Assembly: GCA_024704765.1 (NCBI GenBank)
Contig: JAKMXF010000312.1
Coordinates: 124,001 to 188,000, forward strand
Reading direction: 5' to 3'
DNA: 64,000 nt
Origin: Oopsacas minuta
Taxonomy: Eukaryota; Animalia; Porifera
This document shows positions 10,210-61,459 of the stretch, one piece after another (position 1 is the first letter of the stretch; each line of letters opens with the position of its first letter). The notes beneath the pieces were generated by a model, which saw only the letters and a list, made by a program, of their open reading frames with translations, was not told the origin of the DNA and did no database searches. The translations under genes were made by a program, and so were the position numbers.

Positions 10210-10594
10210 TTTCACACCTAGCAAGCATTATTTATTGAAATATTTGTTGATGTTTATTTGATGATATGACTTTTGAAAAGACCACTTTCAAAAGTGGCAC
10301 ACCAGAATGACACCTAGCAGAATCGTCCACAACTTAATCGTAACCAGAACTATAGATTATGTATATACTTGTTTACTGTCTAGACACCTTTTTGACAATA
10401 ATCATTATTTGTATTTATATATGCTTAAAATCTGATTTTTAATCAAAAATAGCAAATTCTATAAATTCAATATTTCACTGACAATGTTTGTAATTTTATA
10501 ATAATAGCTGTCAGCCACCTAATGAGATAACCTGTGCCATTTGACGACACATTTTATCTTCTTCACATTTACGAGGGTATTCGCATAACAACGA

Positions 10595-13500
10595 ATGTCT
10601 GATGATAGAATTTTGAGTAAGAGGAGTCAGTCGATTCCTACGTCTTACGATAAAATGAAGTCAATAGCTGGATGCTATGATCTGGAAGATACTATAGGTG
10701 ATTATTGTTATTATTGTTTACGGATAGTCAACTCCTGTTATAGCGAAGTCTGAATTGTACAATATGGTTCCTTGAGCTTCTGTATAACAGGAGTTGACCC
10801 CAGCGTTTCCCACAGTATTTTTGGGATTGAGTGGGCCTCTCTCGCTTATACACGTCTACCCTATGCATAGTGCCTTAACGCAGGTAGATATTCTAACCGC
10901 GTCATTCAGCGGCACGTTAATTGACGTGTAAATTGATATACCATCCAAAAGGGGGACAATTTCGCCACATTCCAACGGGCCATGATGCCCGAATCGCAGC
11001 CAAGTGACAAACATATATGCAACCAGTGTTTCCCCAAAGCTAGTCGCATAACCACCTCTAAATAACTTGTACATTCATTGACCAATAGAATATCAGCCTG
11101 TAATACTCTGATAGTTCCAATTAATTCCCTATATCCATAGTCCAATAATACATAATCAGTAATGCATTCTTAACCTCTAGGAGAAGGACATTTTGGTGTA
11201 GTTAAACGCGCCAGACACGTGTTCACAGGTCAGAGAGTAGCAGTTAAGGTTATTGACAAGACTAAGCTGTATAACAGATCTGATGCTAAGGAGGCTAAGG
11301 AACAGCTGGTACAGGAAGTACAGTGTATGAAGCTTGTTAAGCATACTAATGTTGTAACATTATATCAGGTGATTAGCAATATATATATTATGACACTTCC
11401 AAATCTTTCTATAGTAACATTTCATTTTTGGTATCCATAGTCCATAAATTTCCTAAAATTACAAATGCACCTATTCCAATCCTTTTATACTCCCCAGTAA
11501 TCCTATCAACTAATCGAATTAGGTTATAGACACCAACAACAGACTATACCTCATCCTAGAGCTTGGTACAGGCGGTGATCTCTACGATTTTATCCAAAAG
11601 AAGTATCCGCAGGGAATGAAAGAAAAGAAAGACTTAGAGTTCGCTAAGAAGATTTTCCTACAGATTGTGAATGCAATTAAGTATTGCCATGACTTACATA
11701 TTGTACATAGAGATTTGAAGCCAGAAAATATTGTATTTTTCGCTCACGATTTGGTTAAACTCACTGATTTCGGTCTTTCAGCTAACTGTAGGCCTGGACA
11801 GAAGTTGTTGACGTTATGTGGGTCTCTGGAGTATTCGGCTCCTGAGATATTCTTTGGAGAGTCTTACGATGGTCCTGCAGTTGGTAAGTTGTTGTTGTTG
11901 TTGTTGTTGTTTTAGAAACATTTTAATTCAAATTTGGATTGCTGGATCAGAAAATTATGTTACTATTGTCCAACGGTTCCCAACCTGTTCTCCATGGACC
12001 CTTTAGAGGTTCACGGACGACAACAGGGGGACGACTTATTGCCACCTCTTATATCCGACACAATTATCACGCTCTATATTCTATTACTTGTATTTAGATG
12101 TATGGAGTATGGGAGTACTGCTATACATGATGCTAGTAGGAAGATCACCATTTGCTGCTGGTAATGATAATGAAACTCTAATTAATATCATGGATGAGAA
12201 GTACTATACACCTGATTACATACCAGCTGCCTGTAAAAGGTATTTCCAGAGTTATCAAATACAGTAAATGCCGATATAAGAATCATAACTCGATTTACCG
12301 AATCTTTTGTATCTTACTCCATTGAATTTTTACCGGTTATAAGAACATTATGTCCAGTTCCCGAAGATGTTCTTATAACCGCTATATTCCTATAAATGGT
12401 GTGCTTCTAAGTGATACCAATTGGGTTTGACATGTATTTCACACTTCAAATTGGACTTATGAATCACTTGCCAATTGTCCACTTCACACATTTGTGGATT
12501 GACATGTATCCTCTGAATAGTAGGTGTTAAGTATTTACATTCGTGTTTTTGTTTATTTTTCAGATTGTTAAAAAGAATGATAGTCAGGGATGTACACAAT
12601 AGATGCACTGTCTCAGATATTCTAACATCTGATTGGTTAAAAGACGTGCCACTTTCTAAACAGATGCCATTAATAGCTAAAGTCAGAGACTTGTCGAAAG
12701 AGGACAAACTCGTAATTATACAACAGATGGAAGAAGGAAATTTTGGGAGCAAAGACAGCATTCTTAAGTGAGTTATCGTTGCTAGGATAAGACTCCGAAT
12801 AGCATCCATGGTCCAAAATATTTTCCCTGCTCTAATTGCAACTGAAACCAATTAATGCCTTATAGTGAGTGTTGTCACTTGCCTAGTTGTTCATATTGTC
12901 CATTTTCTATAACCAGGATGTTCTTTAACAGCCACTTTTCCCTGTCACAATTATTGACACCTTGATATAATTCTATATTTAGACATTTAGTTGAACATCC
13001 ATACAGCCACTTATCTGCCACATACTACATACTGGCCGAAAAATTCCTGAGAAGAAAGCAGGCATTTAATTCTTCAATTAGAAAGAAGAAAGTTACATAC
13101 CAAGAGTCCGTAACTTCTTCTGGATCTGAAGATGATGTAGAAAGAGTATTGCAAAGGTAAATAAGCGTTGCTAGGATGGAAACTGTAATAAAATTCCCTA
13201 AATATTCACTTAGCTATTATTTGTCGTAATTATTTACTTGTTTCTTTAGAAAAATGGATTTCCCCTCTCCAGCAGGTCAATCAACTCTTCCTACAGTATT
13301 TGAGACTAAGCACGGAGCAGCTGAGACAGGAGTACTAAGAAAGAGGAACCTCGAACTAATACCCACTGTACCACCTACTAGACAGAAGAACACTCCAGAT
13401 GATACATACAGAGACATGTGGGCTAAGCCTGTTAAAGAGGTGTCAATTGTGGAGAGTAACAGCTTTAGATCTCCAACTAAAAGTAGGTTTCAGAGGGACA

Positions 13501-40848: not shown

Positions 40849-43221
40849 ATGGTAGAAACTGACACCTCAAAACATGGACAAGTTAGGGAGCTAATACTAG
40901 CCTCTGTCTTAGACGCGGTGAAACAATGTCAGAGACATTTCGGAGCTGGCCAGGGGGTCGCGACAGAAACGGACCATAGGGTAACGAATCTTTTAAATAG
41001 TTTTGATAGTTGTCTGTCTCATGGGGTCAGACGTAAGGCGGGGAAACTCAAACAAGCGTTCGGACGCCGTGAAGAATCTGGTTCTTTCTGGCCCGTAGTC
41101 AAAGAAGTGTTGAGCGAATTCCAATTCCAAAGATTGAAAAGTGTCGTTCAAGCTGAACGAAGTATTGACTTCTCTAAAGAAAATATGGGCATGGTGTGGC
41201 TTAAGGTGGCACTGAATGAGCGTAACCTTCAAACTATTCTAACAACTTTACTCTCTGATAGACCACTTGTACTTAGATACTACGATGAACATGCTTTCAT
41301 TCGAGACGAAGAGAAAGCGTCTGTTATACCCACGAGTGCTGCCGGGCTTGGATCTGTCATTTTTGCGCTCAATGTGTTTCCAGATACCAGAGTAGGGACC
41401 CCACCTCGTAGTGACGAGAGGAGACAGTCTCCCACCCTACAGTACTCAATGGTACATACCATGAACGGAAAATCTAGCCCACTACTAACAAATAGTGTCG
41501 TTGTGGCTGATAGACAGCTGACTTACAAAACTGACCCACTTATACAGAGTGAGAAAATCTCTACTTACTCTACCCCTAGCTCTTCTGTTTCACAACCTTC
41601 AAATTTCTTACAGGGGGACTTCACACCTGAACCGGTCATAAATGTACCGGTACAGGAAATAGTTCGGAGAGACAGCAAACGTAGAAAGGCTAAAATTAGA
41701 TTTGGAGACACAAGCGAGATTGTACAGCGTCATAAACATAAGATAGATGAATGGAGTGGTTCAATAACTGCCGACACAGATTTGACACCTACTAGTCAAA
41801 CTATTCAGGATACTTTTCAAGGTGTGAATAATGTGTCGCATTCAAATTCAGACAGATATGGGAATGGACTCTTGGAAACGTTTCCAGAAGAATCTAATCC
41901 TACTCCTGATCTATCCGACAGATCTTCAGACTCAGAGGATCAAACAGGATCGATTCCAAAGTTTGTTGGAGAACTCAGCTCTTCTCCTTACAAAATATCT
42001 CACCTCAGTTCTATTTATACTAACCACAAACTGGAAGGCCTACTATCAACCTCACCAGGCAATCAATTGCACGCTTCTACACAGGAAGCTCTCGATGCGA
42101 CAGCTGTTGCTCTAGGGGCCTCTACGGTTGGAAAACGACCGAATTTTCAGGACACAACAAGATTGGCGCCGAGCCAGTCCCTTTCTGAAATGTCACGGGG
42201 AGACCTTGAGGCGCTAATGGTGACTGTTAGTAAACAAAATGAAAAGATAGGTGACAAGAATAAACAACAACAAATCGAACTAGATCGTGAGCAGAGGATA
42301 AATGGAATGCTACGAGATGAAATAGAATTAGAAAAATCTGAAATGAAGCGAAGAGAAGAGGAGTTATCCATGAAGGTATCATCAATCTCCCGTGAGAACG
42401 ATCTCCTTAAGGGTCAACTTAAGAAGTACGTGGGTATAGTACAATCTATGGAGATCAAAGAGGCCATGGGTGTCTCCCGCGGGGTCTCTCTTAACACCCC
42501 ACAGGGTGTCAAAGAATATGCCAACCAGGACAACGAGAAGATACTACAGCTCTCTGATATGTATGGCGAATTAATGGAATTGAACGAAAGGTTGCACAAA
42601 GATTTGATTCTCAAAAACAGAGTAATATTATGTATGCAAGACACAATGTTATCGTTAGGCCTACAATTGCCTACTTTTAATTGCCCGCGCGCGGTAGAAC
42701 AAGACAGCAACGAGTTTATGGCAGAAGGAATTCTAAAACGCGAAATTGTGAAGATATGGATACCATCTGCTTTTCTAAGAGAAGAATCTTTTCATGTTTA
42801 TCAAATATATATCCGTATCCATAACGACGAGTGGAATGTCTATCGTCGCTACACTGAATTCCACGAATTCCACCACCAATTACGCAAAAAGGTCCCAACT
42901 ATTGATAAATTCAATTTTCCTCCTAAGAAGAATATCGGAAGGAAGGACGCGAAACTGGTGGAGGAAAGGCGACAGCGGCTGCAGAGCTATTTGCGTTACA
43001 TGGTGCATCTATTGAGTAACTCTACCTCATTATCAAAACCAGCTATATTCACCGAGAATCTTACAAAACAGAAGTTTCTAGAATTATTACCGTTTTTCTC
43101 AGATTTCAGTGACGCTACTGGGTCCAGAAGTTCATCCCCTGCTGTCGGTCTAGGTGCTGGAGGTAGAAGAAACTCCGCTCAGTTACCACCGCCCAAGTCA
43201 CCGACGTATAAAGGTCTTTGA
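40849..43221 (+). CDS. SNX29: Sorting nexin-29 (RUN, coiled coil, PX), intronless
   Basis: RUN (CLSHG...FWPVVKE...WLKVALNER...YYDEHAFIRDEE), coiled coil, PX (IWIPSAF...HVYQIYIRI...WNVYRRYTEF...FPPKK...ERRQRLQSYL). Confidence 0.9.
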   Translation: MVETDTSKHGQVRELILASVLDAVKQCQRHFGAGQGVATETDHRVTNLLNSFDSCLSHGVRRKAGKLKQAFGRREESGSFWPVVKEVLSEFQFQRLKSVVQAERSIDFSKENMGMVWLKVALNERNLQTILTTLLSDRPLVLRYYDEHAFIRDEEKASVIPTSAAGLGSVIFALNVFPDTRVGTPPRSDERRQSPTLQYSMVHTMNGKSSPLLTNSVVVADRQLTYKTDPLIQSEKISTYSTPSSSVSQPSNFLQGDFTPEPVINVPVQEIVRRDSKRRKAKIRFGDTSEIVQRHKHKIDEWSGSITADTDLTPTSQTIQDTFQGVNNVSHSNSDRYGNGLLETFPEESNPTPDLSDRSSDSEDQTGSIPKFVGELSSSPYKISHLSSIYTNHKLEGLLSTSPGNQLHASTQEALDATAVALGASTVGKRPNFQDTTRLAPSQSLSEMSRGDLEALMVTVSKQNEKIGDKNKQQQIELDREQRINGMLRDEIELEKSEMKRREEELSMKVSSISRENDLLKGQLKKYVGIVQSMEIKEAMGVSRGVSLNTPQGVKEYANQDNEKILQLSDMYGELMELNERLHKDLILKNRVILCMQDTMLSLGLQLPTFNCPRAVEQDSNEFMAEGILKREIVKIWIPSAFLREESFHVYQIYIRIHNDEWNVYRRYTEFHEFHHQLRKKVPTIDKFNFPPKKNIGRKDAKLVEERRQRLQSYLRYMVHLLSNSTSLSKPAIFTENLTKQKFLELLPFFSDFSDATGSRSSSPAVGLGAGGRRNSAQLPPPKSPTYKGL

Positions 43222-43565: not shown

Positions 43566-45422
43566 TTACATAAAATTATCCAAGCAAAGTAGTTTCGCTA
43601 ATTTGTTAAGTTTCATTTCTATTTTTTGAATATTTCCAGCTAAGTTTGAGATTATTTTCGAAGAATCTTCCTTGGGATATTGTATTGTATCTAAATATGC
43701 TTCTATATCTGTGTGTATTTGAGGACATATTATTGATGTCTTTGTTGTTGTTTGTTGATATTCAAAAGGTGTTATGTTGTTAGTCCCGATTTCACACTTC
43801 AAACTGTAACTGAAACTTGCTAATTGGTTCAGTTCTCCTTTTGCAGTTTCACCTTTCGCTGTTTCTAATTCAGATCGCAATTTATGCTTGAGATTTTCGT
43901 TTTTTCGCAATATTTGCATAAATTCCTGTCTCTTGATTACGTAACCATGTTCCGATTTGGAAATCTGTTCTTGTTTCAGTTCCAATTGGGTCACTATCCA
44001 TTCAACCTCTTTAGATACTCTGGACAACATTTTCTCAATTGTCTCAATATCGTTTGTCTGCATTCTATTGGTGTCTAACTGTTGTTTAGATAAATATTTA
44101 CTCGCTTCATAGCAACCAGAAAGTATGCTAAAATTATTCACCTTTTCTAAAATTAGTAACAAATCATTTCCCTCAAAGTTTGCTTCGAGTTTTACGAGAA
44201 TTTTCATTAAATTCTCGTAATTTATTCTATATTTAGAATAAGCGCTAATATTCCCGCTCAATTCTCTTATTGCATAATCCAACTCGATACTTGATTGGTT
44301 CAATCTATGCATCTCATATTCTGCATTTTTCTGTGTTTCCATGGTAACGTCCTTTGTTGCAGTTTGTATTTTCATAATACTCTCTTTTATGATACTTTTC
44401 ACACCTTTTCCATATGGATATTTATTTTGCATCTCTTCAATAACATTCCATAAATTTTCTGTAACTACCCTGGATTGTTCTGATACTAAATTTAGTAACA
44501 AAGATACTTTCCTAATTTCTAATTTTGTCATTTTAAAGTCTGCACACAATTGTTGAATATTTTCATTCACTTTTTGGAAAGCTGAATTCTGCTTGGTATA
44601 CTTCATTAAAGTTGTTTCAAAGGAAATACTTTTTGAGAAGGAATCTTGCGGTTCTTCTTGCTTGAAAATGAAACAGAATGGCGGGAAACCGATTTGTAGA
44701 TTCCTCTTAACACCATACGGTGTCTCGTTGCCCGCCAAAAGTGTCACACTAGCCTTCACTGTATCATGAAATGTGTCTAGTTCCTCTTTACTGAATGATT
44801 TTTCGAAATAATCCGAGCTATAATCATAGCCAGAATATTCACTCATAAAAATAACCTTTTCAGAAATCAGATTCTTGGAAAGACAAACTAAAGTCGCCCA
44901 AAGTTTCCTCACAAGCACGCTATCTTCTTTTCTTCTGGTTAATTTCATTTCTTTTGAGGTGTCGGAAGGTGGCACAATTGTTCGTGACACTAAAAAAGGC
45001 CCAACAACGACACTAATACCATTCATCTTCAGTTCTGCCAACCAATCAGCTAATCGCTTTACCATCATATGAGCCGTATTAGCGAAAAATATTGAAAATC
45101 GAATTTTTGCAAATTTATATTTGGCGCCTATTTGATATAAGGTGTCATTAATTTGATCTTGCAATAGCGCATTTGGAAAATTGTTGATCCAAATTCTGTA
45201 TTCAATAATACAGTTTGTTGTTGTTTGTATATATTTGTTGATATTTTGTATTTGATCAATAATTCGCATGAAACGATCGTCAATGGATGAATCATGCGTA
45301 AAATGATCAGTAGCTATTTCCTTCTCATAATCTTTAGTTATTAGTATAATATGACACCAAACAAACGTGTTAGTTCCATTTATATCCCAGAATCCAATCC
45401 TCTCTTCTTCTGAATATTCCAT
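43566..45422 (-). CDS. Catalytically dead AID/APOBEC-like deaminase-fold domain fused to ~390-aa helical/coiled-coil tail
   Basis: The N-terminal ~200 aa align with the neighbouring deaminases: EYSEEERIGFW~DYSNEELHQFW; RIWINNFP~GIWITNSPC; IRFSIFFAN~VRLILFFSS; LADWLAELKMNGISVVVGPFLVS~LKDWILRLVQMKICIIIGPIIVS. HAE and both Cys are absent. Confidence 0.8.
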   Translation of the reverse strand: MEYSEEERIGFWDINGTNTFVWCHIILITKDYEKEIATDHFTHDSSIDDRFMRIIDQIQNINKYIQTTTNCIIEYRIWINNFPNALLQDQINDTLYQIGAKYKFAKIRFSIFFANTAHMMVKRLADWLAELKMNGISVVVGPFLVSRTIVPPSDTSKEMKLTRRKEDSVLVRKLWATLVCLSKNLISEKVIFMSEYSGYDYSSDYFEKSFSKEELDTFHDTVKASVTLLAGNETPYGVKRNLQIGFPPFCFIFKQEEPQDSFSKSISFETTLMKYTKQNSAFQKVNENIQQLCADFKMTKLEIRKVSLLLNLVSEQSRVVTENLWNVIEEMQNKYPYGKGVKSIIKESIMKIQTATKDVTMETQKNAEYEMHRLNQSSIELDYAIRELSGNISAYSKYRINYENLMKILVKLEANFEGNDLLLILEKVNNFSILSGCYEASKYLSKQQLDTNRMQTNDIETIEKMLSRVSKEVEWIVTQLELKQEQISKSEHGYVIKRQEFMQILRKNENLKHKLRSELETAKGETAKGELNQLASFSYSLKCEIGTNNITPFEYQQTTTKTSIICPQIHTDIEAYLDTIQYPKEDSSKIISNLAGNIQKIEMKLNKLAKLLCLDNFM

Positions 45423-45610
45423 TGTTGTGTGAGTATACACATACTCTTTGAGATAGATATGGAACTTTAGTATTTATTTCTATGGAGAGGGCTTTATGGT
45501 TACTGACTTTGTATGGCAGAAGCTGTATGTATATTAGCTCGTGTTGTATATATTGGATATATGCAGTTGTTCCTAGAAAAGTTATTCTTACATTTTACGG
45601 GATATTCCAT

Positions 45611-46522
45611 ATGCATTTTATCCGCAATTTCACACCTTTAGAAATTGACCGATTTCGGATAAATGATCCAACACAAACTGTTTGTGGTATTACTGCTTAT
45701 ACTGGAGTAAAGCGTAGTATGGTTACATTTGCGAACTGCCACTTGGTTGGTGGAGCAAAACATGCCGAAGTTGTGGCTTTTGAGACGATCAAATCCGCTA
45801 TTTTTCGGAGGTTACTAAGAGAATGGAAATCCAGGAAATATATCTTCCTCGAATTTTGTATTTGTCTTAACTACAGCCCTTGTTCCGCTTGCAGAGACGA
45901 GATCTTTAAATATATTGAAATGTTCCAGGAATGCGTCCCTCGCATTTCAATCCGTATTACGCTATTTTTCTCCTTTTTTAATCGTGAACTTGGTTCACGT
46001 GTAAACCTGAAAAATTGGATTATTAAATTACTAAATATTAAAGTTACTGTTCTAACGGGCCCAATCATTTTGAGTAAAGTACACCGGAAACTATCAGCAT
46101 ATGAGAAGAATCGAGATGGACAAGTAGAAGTTAAGTTCATAAGATTCATAAATTTGCTTGACGCAGGAATTTCTGTGTCAAACCTCACTGGAAACGGGCG
46201 GGAAATCAAATTGAAAGTTCTTTCTAGAGACTCTCTAATTATTTCTATTTATCAAAAAGATCATCCTTACTATTCTCAATTAATTCCGAGATATTCTTCT
46301 TTAATAGAACGCGAACATAACAATCCAAGAATTGCTATCAAAACCCCGAAAATTCTTGATTATATTAAGGAAGGTTCTAAACCTGACACCCCTAAAATAA
46401 AGACAAAACTGAGAATTAGAATCAGAAGAAACCAAATGTCCTCAAAGCGATTTAGGAAGTTTAAGCAGCGAAACGCAAGAAATATGAGATTTACAATCAA
46501 GTCATTCTTTCCCTACAAATAA
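45611..46522 (+). CDS. AID/APOBEC-like zinc-dependent deaminase, copy 1 (likely start MHFIR), long basic C-tail
   Basis: QTVC...KHAEVVAFE...LNYSPCSAC...ITLFFSFF...NWIIKL...GPIILS. Confidence 0.85.
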   Translation: MHFIRNFTPLEIDRFRINDPTQTVCGITAYTGVKRSMVTFANCHLVGGAKHAEVVAFETIKSAIFRRLLREWKSRKYIFLEFCICLNYSPCSACRDEIFKYIEMFQECVPRISIRITLFFSFFNRELGSRVNLKNWIIKLLNIKVTVLTGPIILSKVHRKLSAYEKNRDGQVEVKFIRFINLLDAGISVSNLTGNGREIKLKVLSRDSLIISIYQKDHPYYSQLIPRYSSLIEREHNNPRIAIKTPKILDYIKEGSKPDTPKIKTKLRIRIRRNQMSSKRFRKFKQRNARNMRFTIKSFFPYK

Positions 46523-46714
46523 ACTTCCAAAGTATTTCCCTAATTTGTTGTTGTTTACTTTGAAAGTTATATTTATATTTGCTCTTATTTATTCACACGT
46601 ATTTCTGTCGATTCATATTATTTACGATGATTTACTTATCTGATATCTTTGATATTTATGTTATTCACACTTTGCATTAATCTCATAAATAGCTATATTT
46701 TTCAACCTTAATAG

Positions 46715-47467
46715 ATGCTACCAAATAAAATCACTAAATTCGAAAATATTGAAAAGGAACAGTTTTGGCTATGCAACAAACCAAACACTTTATGTAGAAT
46801 AGTGGTTTGTGTAAGAAGCAGTGCTAATAAGGACGGCTCTGTTGTATTTGAACGGTATTCAAAACCTTTTGACCAACTGCATGCTGAATTAAGTACACTT
46901 AGATTTGTAGCAGATAATCTATATACATATTTAGAAGATGTCTCGATCGACAATTCTACAGTTTTAGATGTTATTATTCGGATTAATAATTCCCCCTGCT
47001 CGGAGTGTCAAGATCCACTCATAGGCCTTTTGCTTGAAATCAAGAGCATGTTAGCTGAAGCTCATTTCCGATTTATTTTGTTTTTCTCGAATTTCTATGA
47101 GAAGTGTGAATTAGGCGTTAGGAATTTTTGCAATTGGATGCAAATATTAGTTGCTAATGATATTATTGTTATTGTCTGTCCGCTTTTTGTCGATACAATG
47201 GTTCCAAAACCATTCAAAGCTGATGAAATGATTCTTCCGAATTATTTAGGTCAGAGTTGTATTGACGATTTTAGGCAAATTCTGTTCTGTATTGACTCTC
47301 AAAAGTATCCATTTCCCGTTTTCACTAGTCATGAATTCTTTCGAAAAAGCTACCCAGTTGACAGGTCACTATTTGGTTGGGAAAATCCTCATTTTATCTC
47401 TTTATGCCCCAACGGTGCACCTCATCACCTTTCTAAACTACAGATTGAGTCGGAATTCTTTGAGTAA
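46715..47467 (+). CDS. AID/APOBEC-like deaminase, copy 2
   Basis: QFW...NTLC...LHAELSTL...INNSPCSEC...FILFFSNFY...CPLFVDTMVPKP. Confidence 0.88.
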   Translation: MLPNKITKFENIEKEQFWLCNKPNTLCRIVVCVRSSANKDGSVVFERYSKPFDQLHAELSTLRFVADNLYTYLEDVSIDNSTVLDVIIRINNSPCSECQDPLIGLLLEIKSMLAEAHFRFILFFSNFYEKCELGVRNFCNWMQILVANDIIVIVCPLFVDTMVPKPFKADEMILPNYLGQSCIDDFRQILFCIDSQKYPFPVFTSHEFFRKSYPVDRSLFGWENPHFISLCPNGAPHHLSKLQIESEFFE

Positions 47468-47860
47468 TTTGATACTTTAAACATTTCTAACTCTAAGTTT
47501 CACTTGTTAATTACTTTCTAAACTTTTCTAATTTGTAACTCTTTTCATCTTCATATTATTTACCTATTATAATTGATCTCAAAATGATATAGATTATATT
47601 ATTCCTCTTTTGTTTGGAAGTAAATACATTTTGTGTAGAGTGGTACTCGCATAAATCGAAGCTCAAGGTCTTCTTGGTTATGCAGGTGTCGGTTATGCAA
47701 TATTGCTCCACTAAAATATGCCTATACAGATATTCATAGGTGTTTGGAAATCCATTTTCTGAATGCTATTAATGAGTTAATGAAGCATAACGAATGGGCG
47801 AAGCTATATTAGTTTGCATATGAATATGGATGTAGCCATTATATTGTATTCAGATAATAT

Positions 47861-48667
47861 ATGTTTGCAAATATTTCTACTTTTTCCAGTTTTCAGAGAA
47901 ATCAGTTTTGGCATTCTTATACTGCGAAACAACAACCCACAACAATATGTAGAATATCTACTATTTTAAAGATAAGAAATCACAACAAAATGTTAGTTAC
48001 ATGCTCAACAACAGCAAGTGTCAAACGTCATGCTGAAGTAGGAGGTACAAATGTTGTTAGTAGACTATTGCTCTCTGACAAATCGTTACATAAGTATTTA
48101 GATAGTGTCATAGACATTAACATACTTCTCAACAACAGCCCGTGCCGTGAATGTCAACTTCATCTTTTGAAAAAAATAATAGCAGTAAAGGAAAACTTAT
48201 CGAATATTCAGTTCCGATTAATTCTATATTTCACTAATTTATACTGTGGGAAAGGTGCCAGAATTGATGAAGCTTTAGATCGGCTAAGTAGATGGATTAT
48301 GAAACTAGTGAATGAAAGTTTTGTTGTTATTATTTGTCCAATTATTGTTTCTACAATGGTTCCAAAACCAAAAAGATTACCCAACAAACTAGGAACAGGG
48401 ATTGAGAAATATGATAAAAGTTGTATCAGAGACTTCAGGAAACTTTTGAAGAAAATTGAATTGATAAATTCAACTCTCAAAGTTTTTACAAGCAACAGAC
48501 TATTTCGTAAACAAATACCAATTAAAATGAGTTTGTTTACTTGGCGTAAACCACAGTTTATTTCTTTTTACCCTGATGATAAAGAAAATCTTTCCTATTT
48601 CGTGCTAAAAACTGCAACTCCAATTGTACGCAAAAAACCACGCAAAAGATTAACCCTCAATTCATAG
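47861..48667 (+). CDS. AID/APOBEC-like deaminase, copy 3 (C-terminal KKPRKR)
   Basis: QFW...TTIC...RHAEVGG...LNNSPCREC...LILYFTNLY...CPIIVSTMVPKP. Confidence 0.88.
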   Translation: MFANISTFSSFQRNQFWHSYTAKQQPTTICRISTILKIRNHNKMLVTCSTTASVKRHAEVGGTNVVSRLLLSDKSLHKYLDSVIDINILLNNSPCRECQLHLLKKIIAVKENLSNIQFRLILYFTNLYCGKGARIDEALDRLSRWIMKLVNESFVVIICPIIVSTMVPKPKRLPNKLGTGIEKYDKSCIRDFRKLLKKIELINSTLKVFTSNRLFRKQIPIKMSLFTWRKPQFISFYPDDKENLSYFVLKTATPIVRKKPRKRLTLNS

Positions 48668-49132
48668 GTACTATAAGCGATCCTCTCTTAAATGTGTTAG
48701 ATCGCACTGCTATATTTCTCATAATTGTTGCTCTTATAATTTCTATAATATTTCCTAAAAATTATTCATGCTCTAACCTAGTGATAATAACTGATAATTG
48801 GAATGCAAAGTTGGCATTTTTGGGACATTTTCACCTTTTTGTATATTTGATTATATTATTTCTATTACATTATTCATATTCTAACGCAGCGGTTCCATGA
48901 ACCCCTTGAGAGTCCACAGGATCAATTGCAGCCTATAGGAGGGGTGTCAGAATGAGAAAGGTCTACTCAAACGTAGTGATAATAACTGTGTACTGTAATA
49001 TACGAATTCACAAAGTACAAATATGTTTATGTACTTGTAGACCCCCTCCCGTAGGCTCCAATAGATCCTGTGTACCCTGCTGTCGTCCTTGACCCCGGTC
49101 TTGTTAAAGGAACCGCTAGATTTTAGCAATAA

Positions 49133-49942
49133 ATGGGATCTTTTCGGAAAAAGAAGGAAATTGTCAAATTTACTCAACGAGAGAAGGGATTTTTTTGGTT
49201 AGCATATAAGCCACCATTGACCGTGTGTAGAGCAGTTATATGCTTGAAGACCAGTTCTGGGGGACAATATCCCAAACCAGCAAGTTCTATATCTGGTAAC
49301 TCTCATGCAGAGGTTCGTGCACTTGAAAAACTTGGACCCAGATTGCCAAAATATCTCAAGAAAAATTATGATCCTTCCGATGATTCTACTGTAATTGAAC
49401 TTGTACTTAGACTTAATAACAGTCCATGTCATGACCATTGTCAAGCTTGTATTACATATTGGATTAAAGATATTCAAGAGTTATTACCTGGGGTACCATT
49501 CCGTTTCATTTTGTTGTTCTCAAATTTCTATCTTGAGTCCCAATCTCAATGTCCCATCAATACAGTCTTAGACTACCAAGCTAGATGGATCAAAGAATTA
49601 GTAGAAATGGGAGTTATTGTTACCCTATGCCCAATTGTTGTCTCTCAAATGGTTCCCCGACCTTTTAATACAACCGTCGATTCTAGATATTTTAGAAAAA
49701 ATGATCCAATCCTGTTGCAAAATTTCAATCTGCTTTTGAAGAAATTTTCTCCAAAAAAGAAAATCAAAACCTTTAGGAGCAAACATTTCAAACAAAGTGT
49801 AAACAATATCAATCCGCACGATTTCACTAATATACCAGCATTTTTCTCCGTTTATCCCGCATCTGAAATGAATTCTACACTCTGCCAATTACCCTCAGAA
49901 TATTCTATCCCGAAAATAGCCAAAAAGTCTGCTCGGTTCTGA
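49133..49942 (+). CDS. AID/APOBEC-like deaminase, copy 4 (PCHDHCQAC variant)
   Basis: FFW...LTVC...SHAEVRALE...LNNSPCHDHCQAC...FILLFSNFY...CPIVVSQMVPRP. Confidence 0.88.
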   Translation: MGSFRKKKEIVKFTQREKGFFWLAYKPPLTVCRAVICLKTSSGGQYPKPASSISGNSHAEVRALEKLGPRLPKYLKKNYDPSDDSTVIELVLRLNNSPCHDHCQACITYWIKDIQELLPGVPFRFILLFSNFYLESQSQCPINTVLDYQARWIKELVEMGVIVTLCPIVVSQMVPRPFNTTVDSRYFRKNDPILLQNFNLLLKKFSPKKKIKTFRSKHFKQSVNNINPHDFTNIPAFFSVYPASEMNSTLCQLPSEYSIPKIAKKSARF

Positions 49943-50313
49943 ACAGCTCTTAATGCCATCTAACAATTTGAATTTTATTCTATCAAACGTATTTTAGAAT
50001 TTTTTCCTTATTTATTCACTTGTTGTGTCTATCTGTATTTCATGCTCTAGCCTAGTGATAACAACTGATAATTGTAATGCAAAGCCGCAAATACAAGTAA
50101 ATTCGCTGTAAGCACTTTTTGTGCCATCTACCATCTACCACGAATTATCCACAATTAATAGTATGCGCTAATACGCTTATAAATGCTAAGATTATTTCTA
50201 ACACATTTATTGCTCTAAAATCTTTTTGGATTGATTTATCAGGAATATTTTCTAATCAGGTTTGCGAGTATTTGTTTATTTGTTTGTTTATGATTGATTT
50301 ACATATTGTACAG

Positions 50314-51288
50314 ATGTATCCTACACAACAACATACAAACAAACAAACAAATATACAACAAACACCAGATACTGTTTGGAAGTTCTCAAATAAAGATTAC
50401 AGTAACGAAGAGCTCCACCAATTTTGGGGAACTTCGAAATCAAGACTAACAACTCACTGTTGGGTATCAGTTAGTTATAGAAGTGAAAAGGGAGTTGTTA
50501 TATCAGAAAGTGGCACAAGTATTGTCCCACTTAAGTGTACAAAAACTAAAAGAATAATACACGCGGAGTCCATGGCTTTGAGAGATATTGCGTCTGAGAA
50601 TATTCCTAGAAACTTGCAGGAAAATTCAGTATTAGATTTAGGAATTTGGATAACAAATAGTCCTTGTAATGACTGTCGTGAATTAATTTCTGAGAGATTG
50701 AAATCTTTTCAGATTTCATTTCCAACCGTGAGATTAATCTTATTCTTCTCCAGCTTATATTGTGGCCGCGACACATCAACTAACGACACTTTGTGCCACT
50801 TAAAAGACTGGATTTTGCGTTTGGTCCAAATGAAAATATGTATAATCATTGGTCCTATAATCGTATCTAAGCATGTACGTGTTCCCCAGAAAATCTGTGA
50901 GAGCAAAAAATATAAACTTAAGGTTAGAAAGGAAAGAGACCTTCGTTCGCTCAAGCATTTCCGAAAACTTAAACGGCTACTGCTATCCTCGCGGTCTCAG
51001 ATATACAATTTGAAATCGAATCATAGAACATTTTCTAACTGTCCCCTGGATGAAAATGTGCTATGTGAAATCGCCCAAAATGATTTATTATATTTTTCTG
51101 TTTTCCCTCCAGACAAGTCTCATCTCGCAGAGCTGACTCCCAATAATATTGGTTTGTTCCTATACATGACTTATTTGCTTGTTTGTAGGTTTACTGCTTG
51201 CCTTGGAGCGGATTCTCAGAAAGACAAAAAGAGAAACAAACAAACAACAACGGTCAGGAAAAATATATATGAGAATGTTAATATCTAG
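50314..51288 (+). CDS. AID/APOBEC-like deaminase, copy 5
   Basis: QFW...TTHC...IHAESMALR...ITNSPCNDC...LILFFSSLY...GPIIVS. Probable intron 50260-50313 just before the ATG, and a possible 37-nt intron 51152-51188 that would move the stop to 51292. Confidence 0.85.
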   Translation: MYPTQQHTNKQTNIQQTPDTVWKFSNKDYSNEELHQFWGTSKSRLTTHCWVSVSYRSEKGVVISESGTSIVPLKCTKTKRIIHAESMALRDIASENIPRNLQENSVLDLGIWITNSPCNDCRELISERLKSFQISFPTVRLILFFSSLYCGRDTSTNDTLCHLKDWILRLVQMKICIIIGPIIVSKHVRVPQKICESKKYKLKVRKERDLRSLKHFRKLKRLLLSSRSQIYNLKSNHRTFSNCPLDENVLCEIAQNDLLYFSVFPPDKSHLAELTPNNIGLFLYMTYLLVCRFTACLGADSQKDKKRNKQTTTVRKNIYENVNI

Positions 51289-51914
51289 CTGAGCTATAGT
51301 TGTTCTCGGTCTTGTGTATTATTTTATAATACTGGCATCATAAAGGACACTTTATCAAATACAAACAAATATAAACAAATACAAACAGATAAACAAAGTT
51401 CTTTCCGTCAGTATTGTAAATAATAATACTTCAAAACCGAGACACACGGCTTAGCTGATATACCATTATTATCATTATTATTATTGTATACCTTGTGTAT
51501 ATATTGTATAAATCTGATCAAATGCAAACAAATGCAAACATTGAAACTCCAAACCTTCAGGGGAACAGGGTCCCATTCAACTCACCCTCCTCCTGCTATT
51601 TATACTCTAGCCATCAGCAAGCTAGAGGTAGCAACCAATCAAATGGTTGCTATTTAGATCAGTTCCACTGAGTCATGCTAGACAGCTGTCTTTCAGTATG
51701 AACTCAGGTTAGGGAGTAGTTAGGCCTAATTGGGGACTGATTGCTGACACTATTCTTGTTAGAAATCTACATCAATGCGAGCCTTTGGCTCAACGCTTTG
51801 TACTGAACTTGGCGCATTGACCGCCACTTTGAGTATTATGATATACATTGTAAGATCAATCCCTTTGAAGCAGTTTTCAAAATTGCATGCCGTAAACCCT
51901 TTCCTTGACCACGG

Positions 51915-51990
51915 ACAAACAAACAAACAAACAAACAAACAAACAAACAAACAAACAAACAAACAAACAAACAAACAAACAGACAAACAA
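51915..51990. repeat. (AAAC)n microsatellite
   Basis: Seen directly; the same repeat class fills many introns in the window. Confidence 0.95.
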
Positions 51991-52296
51991 CAATAGGGAT
52001 TAAATAATATAGATTTTTTGTATTTTGCAGTGTTTATACATGTTTATTGTAGGGGAACAGATTAACTTTCCAGTTATTCGTAACCACAACTTCTCCAATT
52101 AGGTAGGGAGACTAACCCCTGTATTGAGATGCATAAGGCCTCTTCCTGTGTTTATATATGTATAACACAGATGTATTTTGCATTCCATTAACACCTTTTG
52201 TTTCTATGTATTTGTTTGTTATTATTGTTTTCTACAAATAATTTCTATATACACATATCTTGTAGACAAACAGAACAGCCTTTTGTATATTTTATA

Positions 52297-53231: not shown

Positions 53232-54837
53232 ATGGCAGGTTCAGGAGACCACTACACATTCATTGTCCTAGGCGCCAGTGGTGACCTAGCCAAGAAGAAA
53301 ATCTACCCGACACTATGGTCCATATACCAGCAAGACAAATTCCCGCCTAACACTGCCATAGTAGGGTTTGCCCGATCAAAAATGAACCAAAAACAACTGA
53401 TCGAAAAAGTAGAACCGTTCCTTAAGGTGACTGAAGAGCAGAAGGCAACCGCGATGAAATTCTACGGAATAAACTCGTATGTTGCTGGAGAGGGCTACGG
53501 AGACCTCTCCTCATATAAACTACTGGATGATGAGATTTTGAAGCATGAGAAGGGGGCGAATGGACATAGAGTGTTCTATCTAGCTCTGCCCCCTTCTGTA
53601 TTCAAGGTATAACAAAAATAAATAAATCAATCTGTCAATAACTAGTAAACAAACAAACAATAAACATATATTAAACAAACGAACAGACAAACAAACAAAC
53701 AAATAAATAACAAATCTCACCTTTTAGGAAGTAACTCTCGCTATCAAGGCCTCTTGCTGGTCACGTACCGGATACAATCGTGTTATCGTAGAGAAACCGT
53801 TCGGACATGATCTGGAGTCTTCAGACGCGCTATCCAAGCACTTAGGGTCCCTCTTCACAGAGCAGGAGATCTATAGGATCGATCACTACCTCGGGAAGGA
53901 GATGGTACAGAACCTCATGATCCTAAGGTTTGCTAACCAAATATTCACACCTATTTGGAACCGTAACAACATCGCTTCCGTCATGATAACATTCAAGGAA
54001 CCTTTCGGTACCATGGGACGTGGGGGCTATTTTGATGATTTCGGGATAATCCGTGACATCATGCAGAATCATTTATTGCAAATATTTTGTCTTGTTGCTA
54101 TGGAGAAACCACCCACTAAACATGCTAATCACATCCGTGATGAAAAGGTTAAGGTGTTAGAATGTACAAAGACTCTTGGTATTGAGGATGTTGTAATCGG
54201 TCAATATCTAGCTAACCCTGATGGAAAAACCGAGGATTCAAAGACAGGCTACTTAGAAGATGCCACTATCAAGAATAAGAATTCTAACACCCCCACGTAT
54301 GCATGTGCTGCCCTGCGGATCAATAACGAGAGGTGGGACGGCGTTCCTTTCTTCCTGAAATGCGGGAAAGCTCTGAACGAACGCAAAATGGAAGTCCGCG
54401 TCCAGTTTCGCGATGTTCCTGGAGACATATTCGAGGGTAAACTTAAGAGGAATGAGTTGGTGATTCGTGTCCAACCGAATGAGGCTGTCTACTGTAAAAT
54501 GATGAGTAAGGAGCCAGGGATCTCATTTGAACCTCATGAGACCGAATTGGACCTTACCTACCATGTGAAGTATAAAGATGTCAAACTACCTGATGCTTAT
54601 GAACGGTTGATTCTAGATGTTTTCGAAGGTAACCAGCTCAATTTTGTACGTGCAGATGAGCTCCGAGAGGCCTGGCGAGTGTTCACACCTCTGCTGCACG
54701 CGATTGAAGCAAAAGGTGTGAAACCGTTTACGTATACCTACGGGGATCGTGGGCTCAAGGAGGCGGACGATTTTGTGGCAAGTTTCGGTCATATGTACAC
54801 CGGAACCTACAGCTGGGCCAAACCGGCTCACCACTAG
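53232..54837 (+). CDS. G6PD: Glucose-6-phosphate dehydrogenase, 2 exons (53232-53606, 53728-54837)
   Basis: [31 protein letters not shown]. Confidence 0.98.
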
Positions 54838-55014
54838 ATGTATATATATATTTTAGAGAATTAGTAGACTCTATCCAGATTGGTAGTTAGTTACTATGTT
54901 AGTCGAGGTGTTGAGATTTGTTTGTTTGTTTATTTTATGAGATTATGATATTTTCAGTCACGAAAAAATGTTTGTTTGTTTGTTTTGTTGTTTTGCTTAT
55001 AATTAGTTGCATAA

Positions 55015-58003: not shown

Positions 58004-58654
58004 ATGTCTAAAATATCAAAAGATGTATTGAATCAGTCAATCACTGATTTACTCGATTTTTCTAAAAAGCGCAAACGGCATTTTCTAGAGTCAGTCGAGT
58101 TACAAATAACTTTGAAGAATTACGACCCCCAAAAGGACAAGAGGTTCGCCGGTACCGTCCGTCTCAAGCATATCCCCAGGCCCAAGATGAAAATTTGTGT
58201 CCTGGGAGATCAGAAGCATTGTGATGAGGCCCAAGAATTGGGACTGGACTTCAGGACAGTCGACATGCTGAAGAAAATGAATCAGGACAAAAAGCTAGTG
58301 AAGAGAATGGGAAAGAAATACAACGCATTTCTAGCCTCCGATTCGGTCCTCAAGCAAATCCCTAAACTCTTGGGACCCAGTTTACAGCGAGCGGGCAAAT
58401 TTCCCATCCTTGTAACACACGCTGAACCAATGACTAACAAAATCACGGATGTCAAAAGTACGATAAAATTCCAAATGAAGAAAACTACTTGTCTAGCTGT
58501 AGCCATTGGACATGTGGATATGACACAGGCAGAGCTAAATGCTAACATTATCTTATCCATAAACTACTTAGTGAGCTTACTGAAGAAAAACTGGCAAAAT
58601 GTGCGTACACTACACATCAAGTCTACTATGGGGCCCTCCTTTAGGATATATTAG
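58004..58654 (+). CDS. RPL10A: 60S ribosomal protein L10a (uL1), intronless
   Basis: [26 protein letters not shown]...[10 protein letters not shown]...[18 protein letters not shown]. Confidence 0.98.
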
Positions 58655-58815
58655 TGAACAATAGTAACTCCATTGTATTTCAATAGGAAATTATTAGTAT
58701 TTGTAGTTGTAACTGTAGTGAAAATGTAGTGAGATATTAGGTGCTTTTCTTACTGATAAATTCCTTAAATTATAAGAGACATTTCCAAACTATTTTAGAA
58801 TATAATAGCCAAAAA

Positions 58816-60654
58816 ATGTCAGGCTTACGATACGGGCGTACAATGTTTGACAATGAATCAGGACACCCAGAAGAACTGACTTTCCAGAAATCTGATATTC
58901 TTACAATCCTAAAAACTGAAATCGACGGAGCCCCGGGCTGGTGGCTCTGTCAGAAGGGCAACAAGGTAGGTATCGCTCCTGGAAACTTTATCGAGAAACT
59001 CCCGTCAAATTTTGTTCCCCATTTTAAAATAAAAGATAACAGACTTGATATGATAGACCAACGATCCTCTCGTGCACCCTCTGGGGACTATTCGCACCCT
59101 AGGAACCCTAAAATGCACCTCAGAGAAGGTGTAAGTCAACTAAACGTCCAACACAGACAAGTTGAGCAAGCATTTGATCGAGTTCATTCACACTATACAC
59201 GCGAGGTCTTAAAATGTGATCAAATGGACGTGATGAAATGGGGGGCAGTTGTTCGACACTTTTGGACCCTATGCGACAACTATTCGTCCTCTATTCTACT
59301 CTTCACGAAGTTTATCCGAATTTCTGTTCTAGAAACGATCGACGAAAACGTAGACTTCGTTGTGGTTGGAAAACTTTCGAATAGGCTTAACACGCTAGAT
59401 TTGGACTTTCAAGGTTACTCGAATCTTTTGAAAATTACAAAACTACAATTCAATGAAAATACCCCTAAAAATATTCACGCGCTAATAGAACGCGGAGAAA
59501 AATTACCAACTCAAATTCAAGAAGTTTACGCAACTCTTAAAGCGAATAAAAGTATGTTTTTCACAGAAGAGGAGCCAAAGTGGGCGGAAAAACGCGGGGT
59601 TAGGCGCGCGAGTTATGAAGACGTAGATTGTATGGATTTTCTAACACAAGCTATTGAAGTACGCAACAGAAACGAGCTAAAAATAGATATACCTATTATA
59701 GTAGAGCCTCCAGCCCGTAAATCTGCTCCTAGTTCTCCTAATCGTATCAGGGATATGGGAGGGATGAAGGGACGGTCTAGGAGCAAGACAGAGTTAAATG
59801 AAACTAATCTGTTTGTTCCGAACTTAAAAACTAAACTGTCTACTGAGAAATTTGACTCTGTAAGAGAGAGAAAATTCTCAAATTCTATATCACAGCAATT
59901 ATCGAAACTGAAACTGAAAAGCAACCAAAAGAGTTTTCTCAAAAGTTCAAAAGTTAACTCAGCTCATAAGATTGTAATTTCCTCTCCTTCCAATCCACAA
60001 ATGCTACAATCAGTCAGTTCAGATTTCGCCGTCTCAAAGGCGCGTGCAGTTACAATGACCACCCCGGTTATTTCAAAACGTAGAGCTGCTACTGAGAGTA
60101 ATATTATTGAAGGTGGTAGCGTCAATGGCCAATTCCTACCTGTCTCTCCTGGACGGTATGAATCAATGGCAGGTGTTTCTAATTTCTCGTCGCTACCTGC
60201 TGAAAACGTTTCACATTTTAATTATACAAAAAGCACACCAATTGAAGTGACTATTTTAACTGAACTTTACTTGCAATTAGAACAGGTTCTCACTTCTATA
60301 AAAGAGTCCACGAGACGTTTGAAGTTCTCAATGGGTGCGAGTACCCCTGACCCATTGGTCTACTCCCCTCTGGTCCAAAATATGACCGCACATATTTACA
60401 AATGTATTTTCCTACTGCAAATTTCACAAAACAGCTTAGCAGATGACGACAAAAATCTAGCAAAATATATTGAAAATCTTTCAAATTCTGCCAAAAATAT
60501 TATTTCAAAATGTAAAGAATTTCTAAAAGCAAAAAGTTCTAAAATTAGCACAGAATTGACTGTCCTGACTCTTGAATCGACCAATCAGATTTCGGATATA
60601 ATAGTTAGTGTAATGGCTATAAGACATGACACTATGTCTGCCAGTGAAGTGTAA
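58816..60654 (+). CDS. Cas-family (p130Cas/BCAR1/NEDD9-like) SH3 adaptor, intronless
   Basis: N-terminal SH3 (MFDNESGHPEELTFQKSDIL...GWWLC...GIAPGN) is Cas-type, followed by a helical bundle, an S/K-rich linker and a C-terminal FAT-like helical domain. Confidence 0.7.
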   Translation: MSGLRYGRTMFDNESGHPEELTFQKSDILTILKTEIDGAPGWWLCQKGNKVGIAPGNFIEKLPSNFVPHFKIKDNRLDMIDQRSSRAPSGDYSHPRNPKMHLREGVSQLNVQHRQVEQAFDRVHSHYTREVLKCDQMDVMKWGAVVRHFWTLCDNYSSSILLFTKFIRISVLETIDENVDFVVVGKLSNRLNTLDLDFQGYSNLLKITKLQFNENTPKNIHALIERGEKLPTQIQEVYATLKANKSMFFTEEEPKWAEKRGVRRASYEDVDCMDFLTQAIEVRNRNELKIDIPIIVEPPARKSAPSSPNRIRDMGGMKGRSRSKTELNETNLFVPNLKTKLSTEKFDSVRERKFSNSISQQLSKLKLKSNQKSFLKSSKVNSAHKIVISSPSNPQMLQSVSSDFAVSKARAVTMTTPVISKRRAATESNIIEGGSVNGQFLPVSPGRYESMAGVSNFSSLPAENVSHFNYTKSTPIEVTILTELYLQLEQVLTSIKESTRRLKFSMGASTPDPLVYSPLVQNMTAHIYKCIFLLQISQNSLADDDKNLAKYIENLSNSAKNIISKCKEFLKAKSSKISTELTVLTLESTNQISDIIVSVMAIRHDTMSASEV

Positions 60655-60835: not shown

Positions 60836-61459
60836 ATGTTCAAGAACACATTTCAATCCGGTTTCCTATCCATCCTATACTCCATTGGAAGCAGACCCCT
60901 CCACATATGGGACAAGAAAGTCCAAAACGGGCACATTAAGAGGATAACTGACAATGACATCCAGTCACTTATCCTCGAGGTTGTAGGCACAAATGTGTCG
61001 ACAACGTTCATCACTTGCCCAGCTGATCACTGTGAGACTCTGGGGATCAAGCTCCCCTTCTTAGTGATGATAATCAAGAACCTCAAGAAATACTTCACTT
61101 TTGAGGTCATGGTATTGGATGATAAGGACGTAAGAAGGAGGTTCCGTGCTTCTAACTACCAATCAACTACTCGGGTTAAACCCTTCATCTGCACTATGCC
61201 AATGCGTCTGGACGATGGCTGGAATCAAATCCAGTTTAACCTCAGTGATTTTACGCGCAGAGCTTATGGTACCAACTACATAGAGACACTAAGAGTACAG
61301 ATACACGCTAACTGTCGTATACGTAGGGTCTATTTCTCTGACAGGCTGTACTCTGAGGATGAACTCCCAGCTGAGTTCAAGTTGTACCTCCCTGTGCAGG
61401 GAAAGAAAGGACCCGGAGCTGCTAAAGAGACTACTCAGCTAACTCAACAGCCTTTATAA
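60836..61459 (+). CDS. CFAP20: Cilia- and flagella-associated protein 20, intronless
   Basis: [36 protein letters not shown]... closely follows the conserved family sequence. Confidence 0.98.

Follow-up and report, generated by a model that had tools for sequence, protein, structure and literature searches.

A tandem array of AID/APOBEC-superfamily deaminase genes, with a conserved but catalytically dead neighbour, in the glass sponge Oopsacas minuta

AID/APOBEC-like deaminases are found in many invertebrates, sponges included, where they form lineage-specific tandem arrays and their substrate loops diverge rapidly (Krishnan et al. 2018, PMC5889660). That survey also recorded an array containing a pseudogene, paralogues that one individual has and another lacks, and inactive copies that have arisen repeatedly and were proposed to be decoys or binders; from sponges it reported only the secreted SNAD4 clade (PMC5889660). 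Members from sea urchin and Lingula act as mutators and are expressed in an immune-related manner (Liu et al. 2018, PMC5956068). Here we analyse a 64,000-nt stretch of the genome of Oopsacas minuta (GenBank assembly GCA_024704765.1, contig JAKMXF010000312.1, positions 124,001 to 188,000 of the forward strand), referred to below as the window and numbered from its first letter. It carries five consecutive genes, g2 to g6, for AID/APOBEC-like deaminases and, in the opposite orientation, a homologue without the catalytic residues, g1. The array belongs to an undescribed, unannotated family; clusters of invertebrate deaminases of this kind are already known. The initial annotation of this DNA, made from its letters, overstated the novelty of the locus: tandem invertebrate arrays with pseudogenes, copy-number differences and inactive copies had been published (PMC5889660; also PMC5956068). 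The words APOBEC and deaminase were not found in the main texts of two glass-sponge genome papers (PMC10280926, PMC10282587).

The deaminase family and its inactive member

Scanning all six frames of the whole window for the pattern [HC][AVSP]E-x15-60-PC-x2-4-C gave exactly five matches in 64 kb, all on the + strand and all within the intronless, consecutive open reading frames (ORFs) of g2-g6 (45611-51288), so that the five deaminase genes initially annotated are the only such frames present. The features of the locus are as follows.

43566-45422, minus strand: g1, a 618-aa ORF; its N-terminal ~215 aa are a catalytically dead deaminase homologue, its C-terminal ~340 aa an orphan, predicted long-helix region
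45423-45610, no strand: g1-g2 intergenic segment, short and divergent; putative bidirectional promoter
45611-46522, + strand: g2, AID/APOBEC-like, with HAE and NYSPCSAC; very basic C-terminal tail; the most divergent member
46715-47467, + strand: g3, AID/APOBEC-like, with HAE and NNSPCSEC
47861-48667, + strand: g4, AID/APOBEC-like, with HAE and NNSPCREC; basic tail
49133-49942, + strand: g5, AID/APOBEC-like, with HAE and NNSPCHDHC, one extra residue between the two Cys
50314-51288, + strand: g6, with HAE and TNSPCNDC; hydrophobic C-terminal segment; the best conserved and most highly transcribed deaminase, with a transcript to ~52100
48048-49936, no strand: segment missing in a second DNA allele, taking g4 from codon 63 on and all of g5
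48765-48810, + strand: first copy of a 46-nt element, ~100 nt downstream of the g4 stop
50039-50084: second copy of that element, ~100 nt downstream of the g5 stop, 93% identical to the first

The proteins encoded by g1-g6 align over ~250 residues with pairwise identities of 16-26%, in agreement with the high divergence outside the motifs that had been noted at the outset. The blocks common to the family alignment are FW, T-x-C, HAE, NSPCxxC, (R)LILFFS, W and CPIIVS, and in g2-g6 the Glu of HAE lies 29-36 residues before PC. Across a 30-member family alignment the His and both Cys are invariant, and the Glu is present in all but one member (29/30), a relative that reads HIV for HAE. Two of the motif identifications made earlier did not survive. 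The T-x-C block had been taken for the AID motif, but that of AID/APOBEC proteins is T-x-x-C, and only the T lines up in the hidden Markov model alignment to APOBEC2. The link drawn from NNSPC to APOBEC4 finds no backing in Pfam either, the model PF18775 staying below its cut-off of 27.2 everywhere (24.0 for g6, 16.3 for g4, 15.5 for g2, and no match for g3, g5 and g1).

Searched against Pfam, g6 exceeds the curated cut-offs of four models, SNAD4 (39.5 bits), NAD1 (36.6), APOBEC_N (34.4) and APOBEC2 (32.7), while PF00383 (dCMP_cyt_deam_1), which matches g6 only, ranks fifth, its 24.5 bits falling just short of the cut-off of 25. The matches of the other genes all lie below cut-off: g2 to SNAD4 (its top model), APOBEC3, APOBEC4 and NAD1, g3 to APOBEC_N (21.4 bits) and g4 to NAD1 (24.8 bits); g5 alone has no Pfam match, and it takes the family alignment to recognise it. 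A profile of the 30 members, run against the sequences of the PDB, places APOBEC2 first (E=0.003), followed by APOBEC3H and AID, with TAD3 (E=0.11) and T4 dCMP deaminase (E=0.87) behind the APOBECs.

The fold assignment comes from the predicted model of one member, g6. Computed with AlphaFold on the family alignment, this model has a mean pLDDT of 82.5 and shows its elements in the order expected of the AID/APOBEC fold: a helix, a beta hairpin, the HAE helix, a strand, the PCxxC helix, a strand, a helix, a strand and a long helix. In the PDB its top 50 Foldseek matches consist exclusively of AID, APOBEC3A/B/C/F/G/H and APOBEC2 structures; E values reach 6e-8, and TM scores, normalised by target length, span 0.5-0.64. 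The AlphaFold DB clusters give the same AID/APOBEC picture, with no identity above 19%, and the ten best matches of a language-model search of the Atlas are all APOBEC-clan clusters. We thus predict with good confidence that g6 has the AID/APOBEC fold. A further, confidently modelled extension of ~50 residues follows the long helix 6 and is common to the active proteins.

The same 30-member profile, built without g1, found 102 matches among 1.84 billion representative proteins; ~55 of them are close family, and of the 56 distant matches scanned 52 fit the APOBEC_N, NAD1 and SNAD4 models. None of ten family members or near relatives sampled is named or has an accession, all being from unannotated ENA or Logan assemblies. 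For most of the distant relatives, as for g6, the highest-scoring Pfam model is SNAD4; the clade models (SNAD4, NAD1, APOBEC_N, APOBEC2) cross-match heavily on other proteins, and the lead of SNAD4 on g6 is a matter of a few bits. With a lead so small and no signal peptide, the family fits no named AID/APOBEC clade clearly, and the Pfam models allow no clade assignment. That g2-g6 are zinc deaminases of the AID/APOBEC superfamily, and not of the TadA, CDA or dCMP-deaminase types, is well supported; AID/APOBEC proteins came first in the Pfam, PDB profile, Foldseek and AlphaFold DB comparisons.

The initial annotation had described a dead sixth member, and in one respect rightly: g1 is a homologue lacking all four catalytic residues. 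It is not, on the other hand, a decayed copy or pseudogene; judged from its relatives it is a conserved gene, encoding its 618-aa protein on the minus strand. The profile built without g1 matches its residues 2-214 at E=2e-11, and g1 shares 53-66% identity with seven orthologues of 615-627 aa, more than the active paralogues have across the same assemblies, with equal conservation in the pseudo-deaminase part and the helical tail. The His, the Glu and both Cys are missing from g1 and from all seven orthologues, which read NxFPNA(L/I) or NKFPHAI at the site where the other proteins have NNSPCxxC; the residues were therefore lost long ago, and the protein was kept. The tail gave no Pfam match beyond chance level, and in the Atlas nothing above 0.63.

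The active proteins have no hydrophobic N-terminal segment when read from the conserved Met. The best mean hydropathy of any 19 residues within the first 40 aa is <=1.3 in the five window genes and <=1.54 over all 30 family members, and the absence of signal peptides that had been remarked on initially holds by this heuristic. The exception to these hydrophilic N-termini is g2 with an unconfirmed upstream extension, where an alternative ATG at 45482 would prepend 43 hydrophobic amino acids; the nearest orthologue is without these residues, and g2 probably starts at ATG 45611, with 45482 unused. The distinctive features lie instead at the C-terminus. Among the last 40 residues of g2, 16 are K or R, and many other members, g4 included, likewise have K/R-rich tails, while four relatives of g6 end in a hydrophobic 19-mer (mean hydropathy 2.0-2.7). 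Such tails suggest that the paralogues may differ in localisation.

Turnover, rates of change and transcription

Syntenic arrays, each of 7-11 + strand family ORFs, are present in at least three related assemblies (L001-L003), and in both window and relatives the array is followed in the same order by the genes for G6PD, tryptophan dioxygenase (TDO), RPL10A, an SH3 protein and CFA20. A minus-strand gene of the g1 type, ~620 aa long, stands at the array edge in L001 and L002. In the window the ATG of g1 (45422) is 189 bp from g2, head-to-head with the array, and L001 and L002 have the same arrangement with a spacing of ~210 bp.

A maximum-likelihood tree gives well-supported clades for g1, g6 and g3. 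The orthologues of g6 (P0001-P0008) are 38-52% identical. The g3 clade contains one L002 copy (L002_6690) and three from L003, with support of 100/99; g4 is sister to it (96/92) and has no strict orthologue in the three arrays fetched. Gene g5 groups with L001_4874 and L002_4530 (90/91), both of which have four residues between the Cys, and g2, on the longest branch, pairs weakly with L001_2218. Duplicates specific to one lineage occur in the tree, for example the three g3-type copies of L003, and the relatives contain two frame-broken copies besides the one in which HAE has become HIV. The tree and the syntenic arrays indicate that the paralogue lineages arose before several species separated and continue to duplicate, break and be deleted; the array is under birth-and-death evolution.

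In related assemblies, copies of the g6 type also lie dispersed outside the array (L007 and L008/L009, at 10001-10912 / 10001-11002), adjoining genes for C-type lectin, zf-TRAF/MATH, tetraspanin and MULE transposase proteins, a neighbourhood that looks immune-related.

The proteins of this family change fast, whether species, recent paralogues or alleles are compared. Ratios of non-synonymous to synonymous substitution rates (dN/dS) were estimated pairwise and gene-wide by the Nei-Gojobori method. Recent paralogue pairs give 0.59-0.75 and g6 orthologues 0.19-0.30, against 0.01-0.12 for the flanking G6PD, RPL10A and SH3 genes in the same species pair; dN in that pair is four times that of G6PD for g6 and ten times for the g3 type. 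A g3-type pair between two relatives gives 0.39. For g3 and g5 against the nearest homologue in a related assembly the ratio is 0.13-0.16, from saturated dS; with synonymous sites saturated between window and relatives, such ratios set minimum values and carry little weight.

The single-base differences listed between alleles comprise 37 non-synonymous and 12 synonymous changes in g2, g3, g4 and g6; the corresponding figures for the G6PD exon are 0 and 2. For g3 the listed differences are 16 and 3, and nine of the 16 replacements fall in codons 61-75, directly after the catalytic HAE. These counts are indicative only, some variants being private to one sequencing run and more than two haplotypes being present. 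Within g3 (46746-47058) RNA run X2 has variants of its own, DNA runs X3 and X4 have others, and X1 matches the window; this implies at least three haplotypes under one sample code, and hence more than one individual or a chimeric specimen. A deletion allele is present in the contigs of X3 and X4, joining 48047 to 49937 with one inserted T; it keeps 62 codons of g4 and removes g5. The undeleted allele occurs in the same two runs at lower depth.

Run X2 is identified as RNA by its GT..AG joints (55557>55662 and 52099>52263), absent from DNA run X3, its depth range of 69 to ~148,000 and its TruSeq adapter ends. Its k-mer depth over 50300-52100, which covers g6 and ~0.8 kb of 3' region, is 15,000-50,000 against 69-380 beside it, and g6 is the only long ORF under this block. 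Over g2-g5 the depth is 85-270, and a contig of 2,292 nt (depth 86), which ends at 45633, would span all of g1 if it is collinear with the window. A uniform background of DNA fits poorly with the gaps in coverage at 45634-45735 and 48955-49108. No joints fall within the array, in agreement with intronless genes. In this one run, then, g6 is strongly transcribed and g1-g5 weakly. The G6PD gene (53300-54900) reaches 100,000-148,000 in X2, unusually high for this enzyme and about three times g6. The 52099-52263 joint, 163 nt long and of depth 22, lies just beyond the g6 3' block, which points either to infrequent splicing of read-through RNA or to a small transcript of its own.

Other details of the layout may be noted here. 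The start of g6 is probably ATG 50290 or 50314, with the bacterial-code TTG at 50119 unused, and the bacterial-code GTG at 45440 is not a likely eukaryotic start for g1. Stretches of (ACAA)n-type microsatellite occupy 50323-50364, 51349-51410 and 51903-52004, in the 5' coding end and the 3' untranslated region (UTR) of g6; the coding stretch translates to a Q/T/N/K-rich N-terminus where the orthologues have poly-Q. The two 46-nt elements are 93% identical although the coding regions of g4 and g5 are only ~25-30% identical; the window holds no further copy (0.01 chance matches expected) and nine related loci hold none. The element could be a 3' UTR element, a promoter element or a remnant of duplication. 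Outside the array a 790-aa RUN and PX domain protein (SNX29-like, 40849-43221), RPL10A (58004-58654), the 637-aa SH3 protein (58741-60654) and CFA20 (60836-61459) are each encoded by one uninterrupted ORF, which points to an intron-poor genome. The RPL10A protein has just 63-68% identity to that of any named animal, a sign of a long branch. This dense, largely single-exon, microsyntenic layout fits the descriptions in the glass-sponge genome papers (PMC10280926, PMC10282587).

What the array may do

We think it rather probable, on balance, that this tandem array, which evolves by birth and death, encodes intracellular AID/APOBEC-superfamily deaminases in intronless genes, that they form a family without annotated relatives, and that the array serves in defence. 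Each active member would hydrolytically convert cytosine to uracil in single-stranded DNA or RNA. By analogy with APOBEC3, the fast-evolving g2-g5 would form a diversified innate restriction or mutator set directed against viruses and transposons, and the basic tails of several of them resemble nuclear-localisation or nucleic-acid-binding signals. The conserved and abundant g6 may be a constitutive, membrane-tethered member. For g1 a non-catalytic role seems most likely, as a binder of nucleic acids or partner proteins, a scaffold, a regulator or a decoy acting through its long helical tail.

Several observations weigh against this account. Gene-wide dN/dS never exceeds 1 (range 0.13-0.75), so that an arms race accounts for the rates no better than relaxed constraint would; the APOBEC3-like character initially proposed for the locus stands as regards the tandem array, gene gain and loss, copy-number polymorphism (the g4-g5 deletion) and fast evolution, positive selection at substrate- or antagonist-contact sites being a possibility. 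The RNA depth of g1-g5 is only one to four times that of a nearby intergenic piece (69), and it comes from one RNA run whose contigs do not give the strand. Over 12 kb no excess of C>T was seen in RNA at the 10% level, in runs that carry more than two haplotypes. Only g6 passes the Pfam cut-offs alone, g5 needing the family alignment. The hydrophobic stretch of the window g6 is weaker than those of its relatives, has an Arg inside it and is followed by 30 hydrophilic residues, which leaves membrane anchoring uncertain. The structure model of g1, built on the seven orthologues, is unreliable (pLDDT 43); only its order of elements is usable, and this matches the deaminase core.

The genes might instead encode AID/APOBEC-like enzymes with endogenous roles, such as programmed RNA editing, DNA demethylation or nucleotide-pool maintenance, and this would apply above all to g6. 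As APOBEC1, APOBEC2 and APOBEC4 show, members of this family can serve outside defence or in roles yet unknown. Such a role would suit the dN/dS of g6, the slowest-evolving active member, its orthologues in every related assembly together with the dispersed copies, and an RNA depth of the same order as that of the neighbouring G6PD. Yet even g6 has its fourfold dN relative to G6PD, its dispersed copies in relatives sit beside TRAF/MATH and C-type lectin genes, and for g2-g5 the turnover, the tolerated null allele and the mostly non-synonymous allelic differences are unusual for housekeeping editors; we regard endogenous roles as an unlikely explanation of the array. That g2-g5 are redundant duplicates drifting towards pseudogenes under relaxed selection, with only g6 and perhaps g1 of consequence, seems to us less likely again. 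It would account for the ratios of 0.59-0.75 between recent paralogues, the near-neutral ratio of the allelic differences listed, the low RNA depth of g2-g5, the broken copies in relatives and the fact that the g4-g5 null allele is the deeper one in X3 and X4, but hardly for the state of the window genes, all five of which are intact with all four catalytic residues although their lineages predate a species split at which synonymous sites are saturated, nor for the lower ratios of g3 and g5 (with their saturated dS) and of the g3-type pair.

The two remaining alternatives concern what kind of deaminase these are. Membership of the secreted sponge clade SNAD4, with the proteins acting outside the cell like toxin-derived deaminases, would fit the Pfam ranking of g6, g2 and most of the distant relatives, and SNAD4 is sponge-restricted and expanded in single species (PMC5889660). 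But NAD1, APOBEC_N and APOBEC2 score nearly as well with models that cross-match, not one of 30 members has an N-terminal hydrophobic segment after the conserved start, and what the proteins carry instead is a C-terminal hydrophobic segment (g6 type) or a basic tail (others), and we consider secretion very improbable. Enzymes of free nucleotides or tRNA (CDA, dCMP deaminase, TadA/ADAT) misread as APOBEC-like have the least to recommend them, and we give them scarcely any credence: they share HxE/PCxxC, and g6 comes close to the PF00383 cut-off with TAD3 and T4 dCMP deaminase further down the profile search, yet AID/APOBEC proteins lead by orders of magnitude in every sequence, profile and fold search, and tandem expansion with rapid divergence is alien to such housekeeping enzymes. 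With PF00383 below cut-off and the TAD3 and dCMP deaminase matches behind the APOBECs, this identity was rejected.

Returning to intracellular defence, a more elaborate form of it can be imagined, in which the locus would be a three-part glass-sponge module older than the species splits: a membrane-tethered g6 type, diversifying soluble or nuclear g2-g5, and a co-regulated, dead, coiled-coil-fused g1 that scaffolds, regulates or shields the others. We put this forward as a speculation that is doubtful as it stands; if true, nucleic-acid immunity by non-secreted AID/APOBEC enzymes, together with a pseudo-enzyme partner dedicated to it, would go back to the base of the animal tree. Should the enzymes be active polynucleotide mutators, non-secreted defence of the AID/APOBEC type would in any case reach the sponges. 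What is new here is a non-secreted family in a sponge; a dead partner with a long helical tail, head-to-head with the array in a position kept across species; a g6 lineage that is highly expressed and may be tail-anchored; and clean synteny over several assemblies. New insight is likeliest to come from the dead partner and from the membrane anchor that g6 may have, and the compact, intronless, syntenic array offers a natural series for the evolution of specificity loops, targeting tails and inactive partners. The enzymes might also be used as base-editor scaffolds, though this is speculative.

Comparison with known deaminase systems

The closest described systems are the invertebrate expansions of Nematostella, Lingula and sea urchin (SpAIDL; PMC5889660, PMC5956068). 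Like them, the sponge array consists of mostly single-exon tandem genes that have diverged to an extreme degree round the HxE/PCxxC core, and shared too are array pseudogenes, differences between individuals in paralogue number, inactive copies and the lack of a signal peptide. Unlike them, the present family is unannotated and barely matched by the Pfam clade models, has the conserved ~50-residue extension after helix 6, includes one lineage with a C-terminal hydrophobic segment, and is accompanied across species by a dead copy that is joined to a long helical region and stands head-to-head with the array.

With SNAD4 (PF18750), compared here through its Pfam model and published description, the family has in common that this is its best-scoring model and that SNAD4, reported only from sponges, is expanded within species and varies in the lengths of loop 1 and loop 7; the signal peptide that defines SNAD4 is absent. 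APOBEC4 shares with this family a SWSPC motif in its N-S-P-C variant and a long C-terminal extension, but is a slowly evolving, single-copy gene.

The mammalian APOBEC3 locus resembles the present one in its tandem arrangement, fast protein evolution, inactive domains and copy-number polymorphism (compare the human A3B deletion), as well as in the fold, so far as the predicted g6 model can be matched to it (TM 0.5-0.64, by target length). The two expansions are nevertheless independent, at ~12-20% identity, and no gene-wide dN/dS above 1 is seen in the sponge. The inactive unit differs as well: the inactive domains of APOBEC3 proteins keep the zinc ligands and are fused to an active domain, while in Oopsacas minuta the inactive unit is a separate gene from which the ligands are gone.

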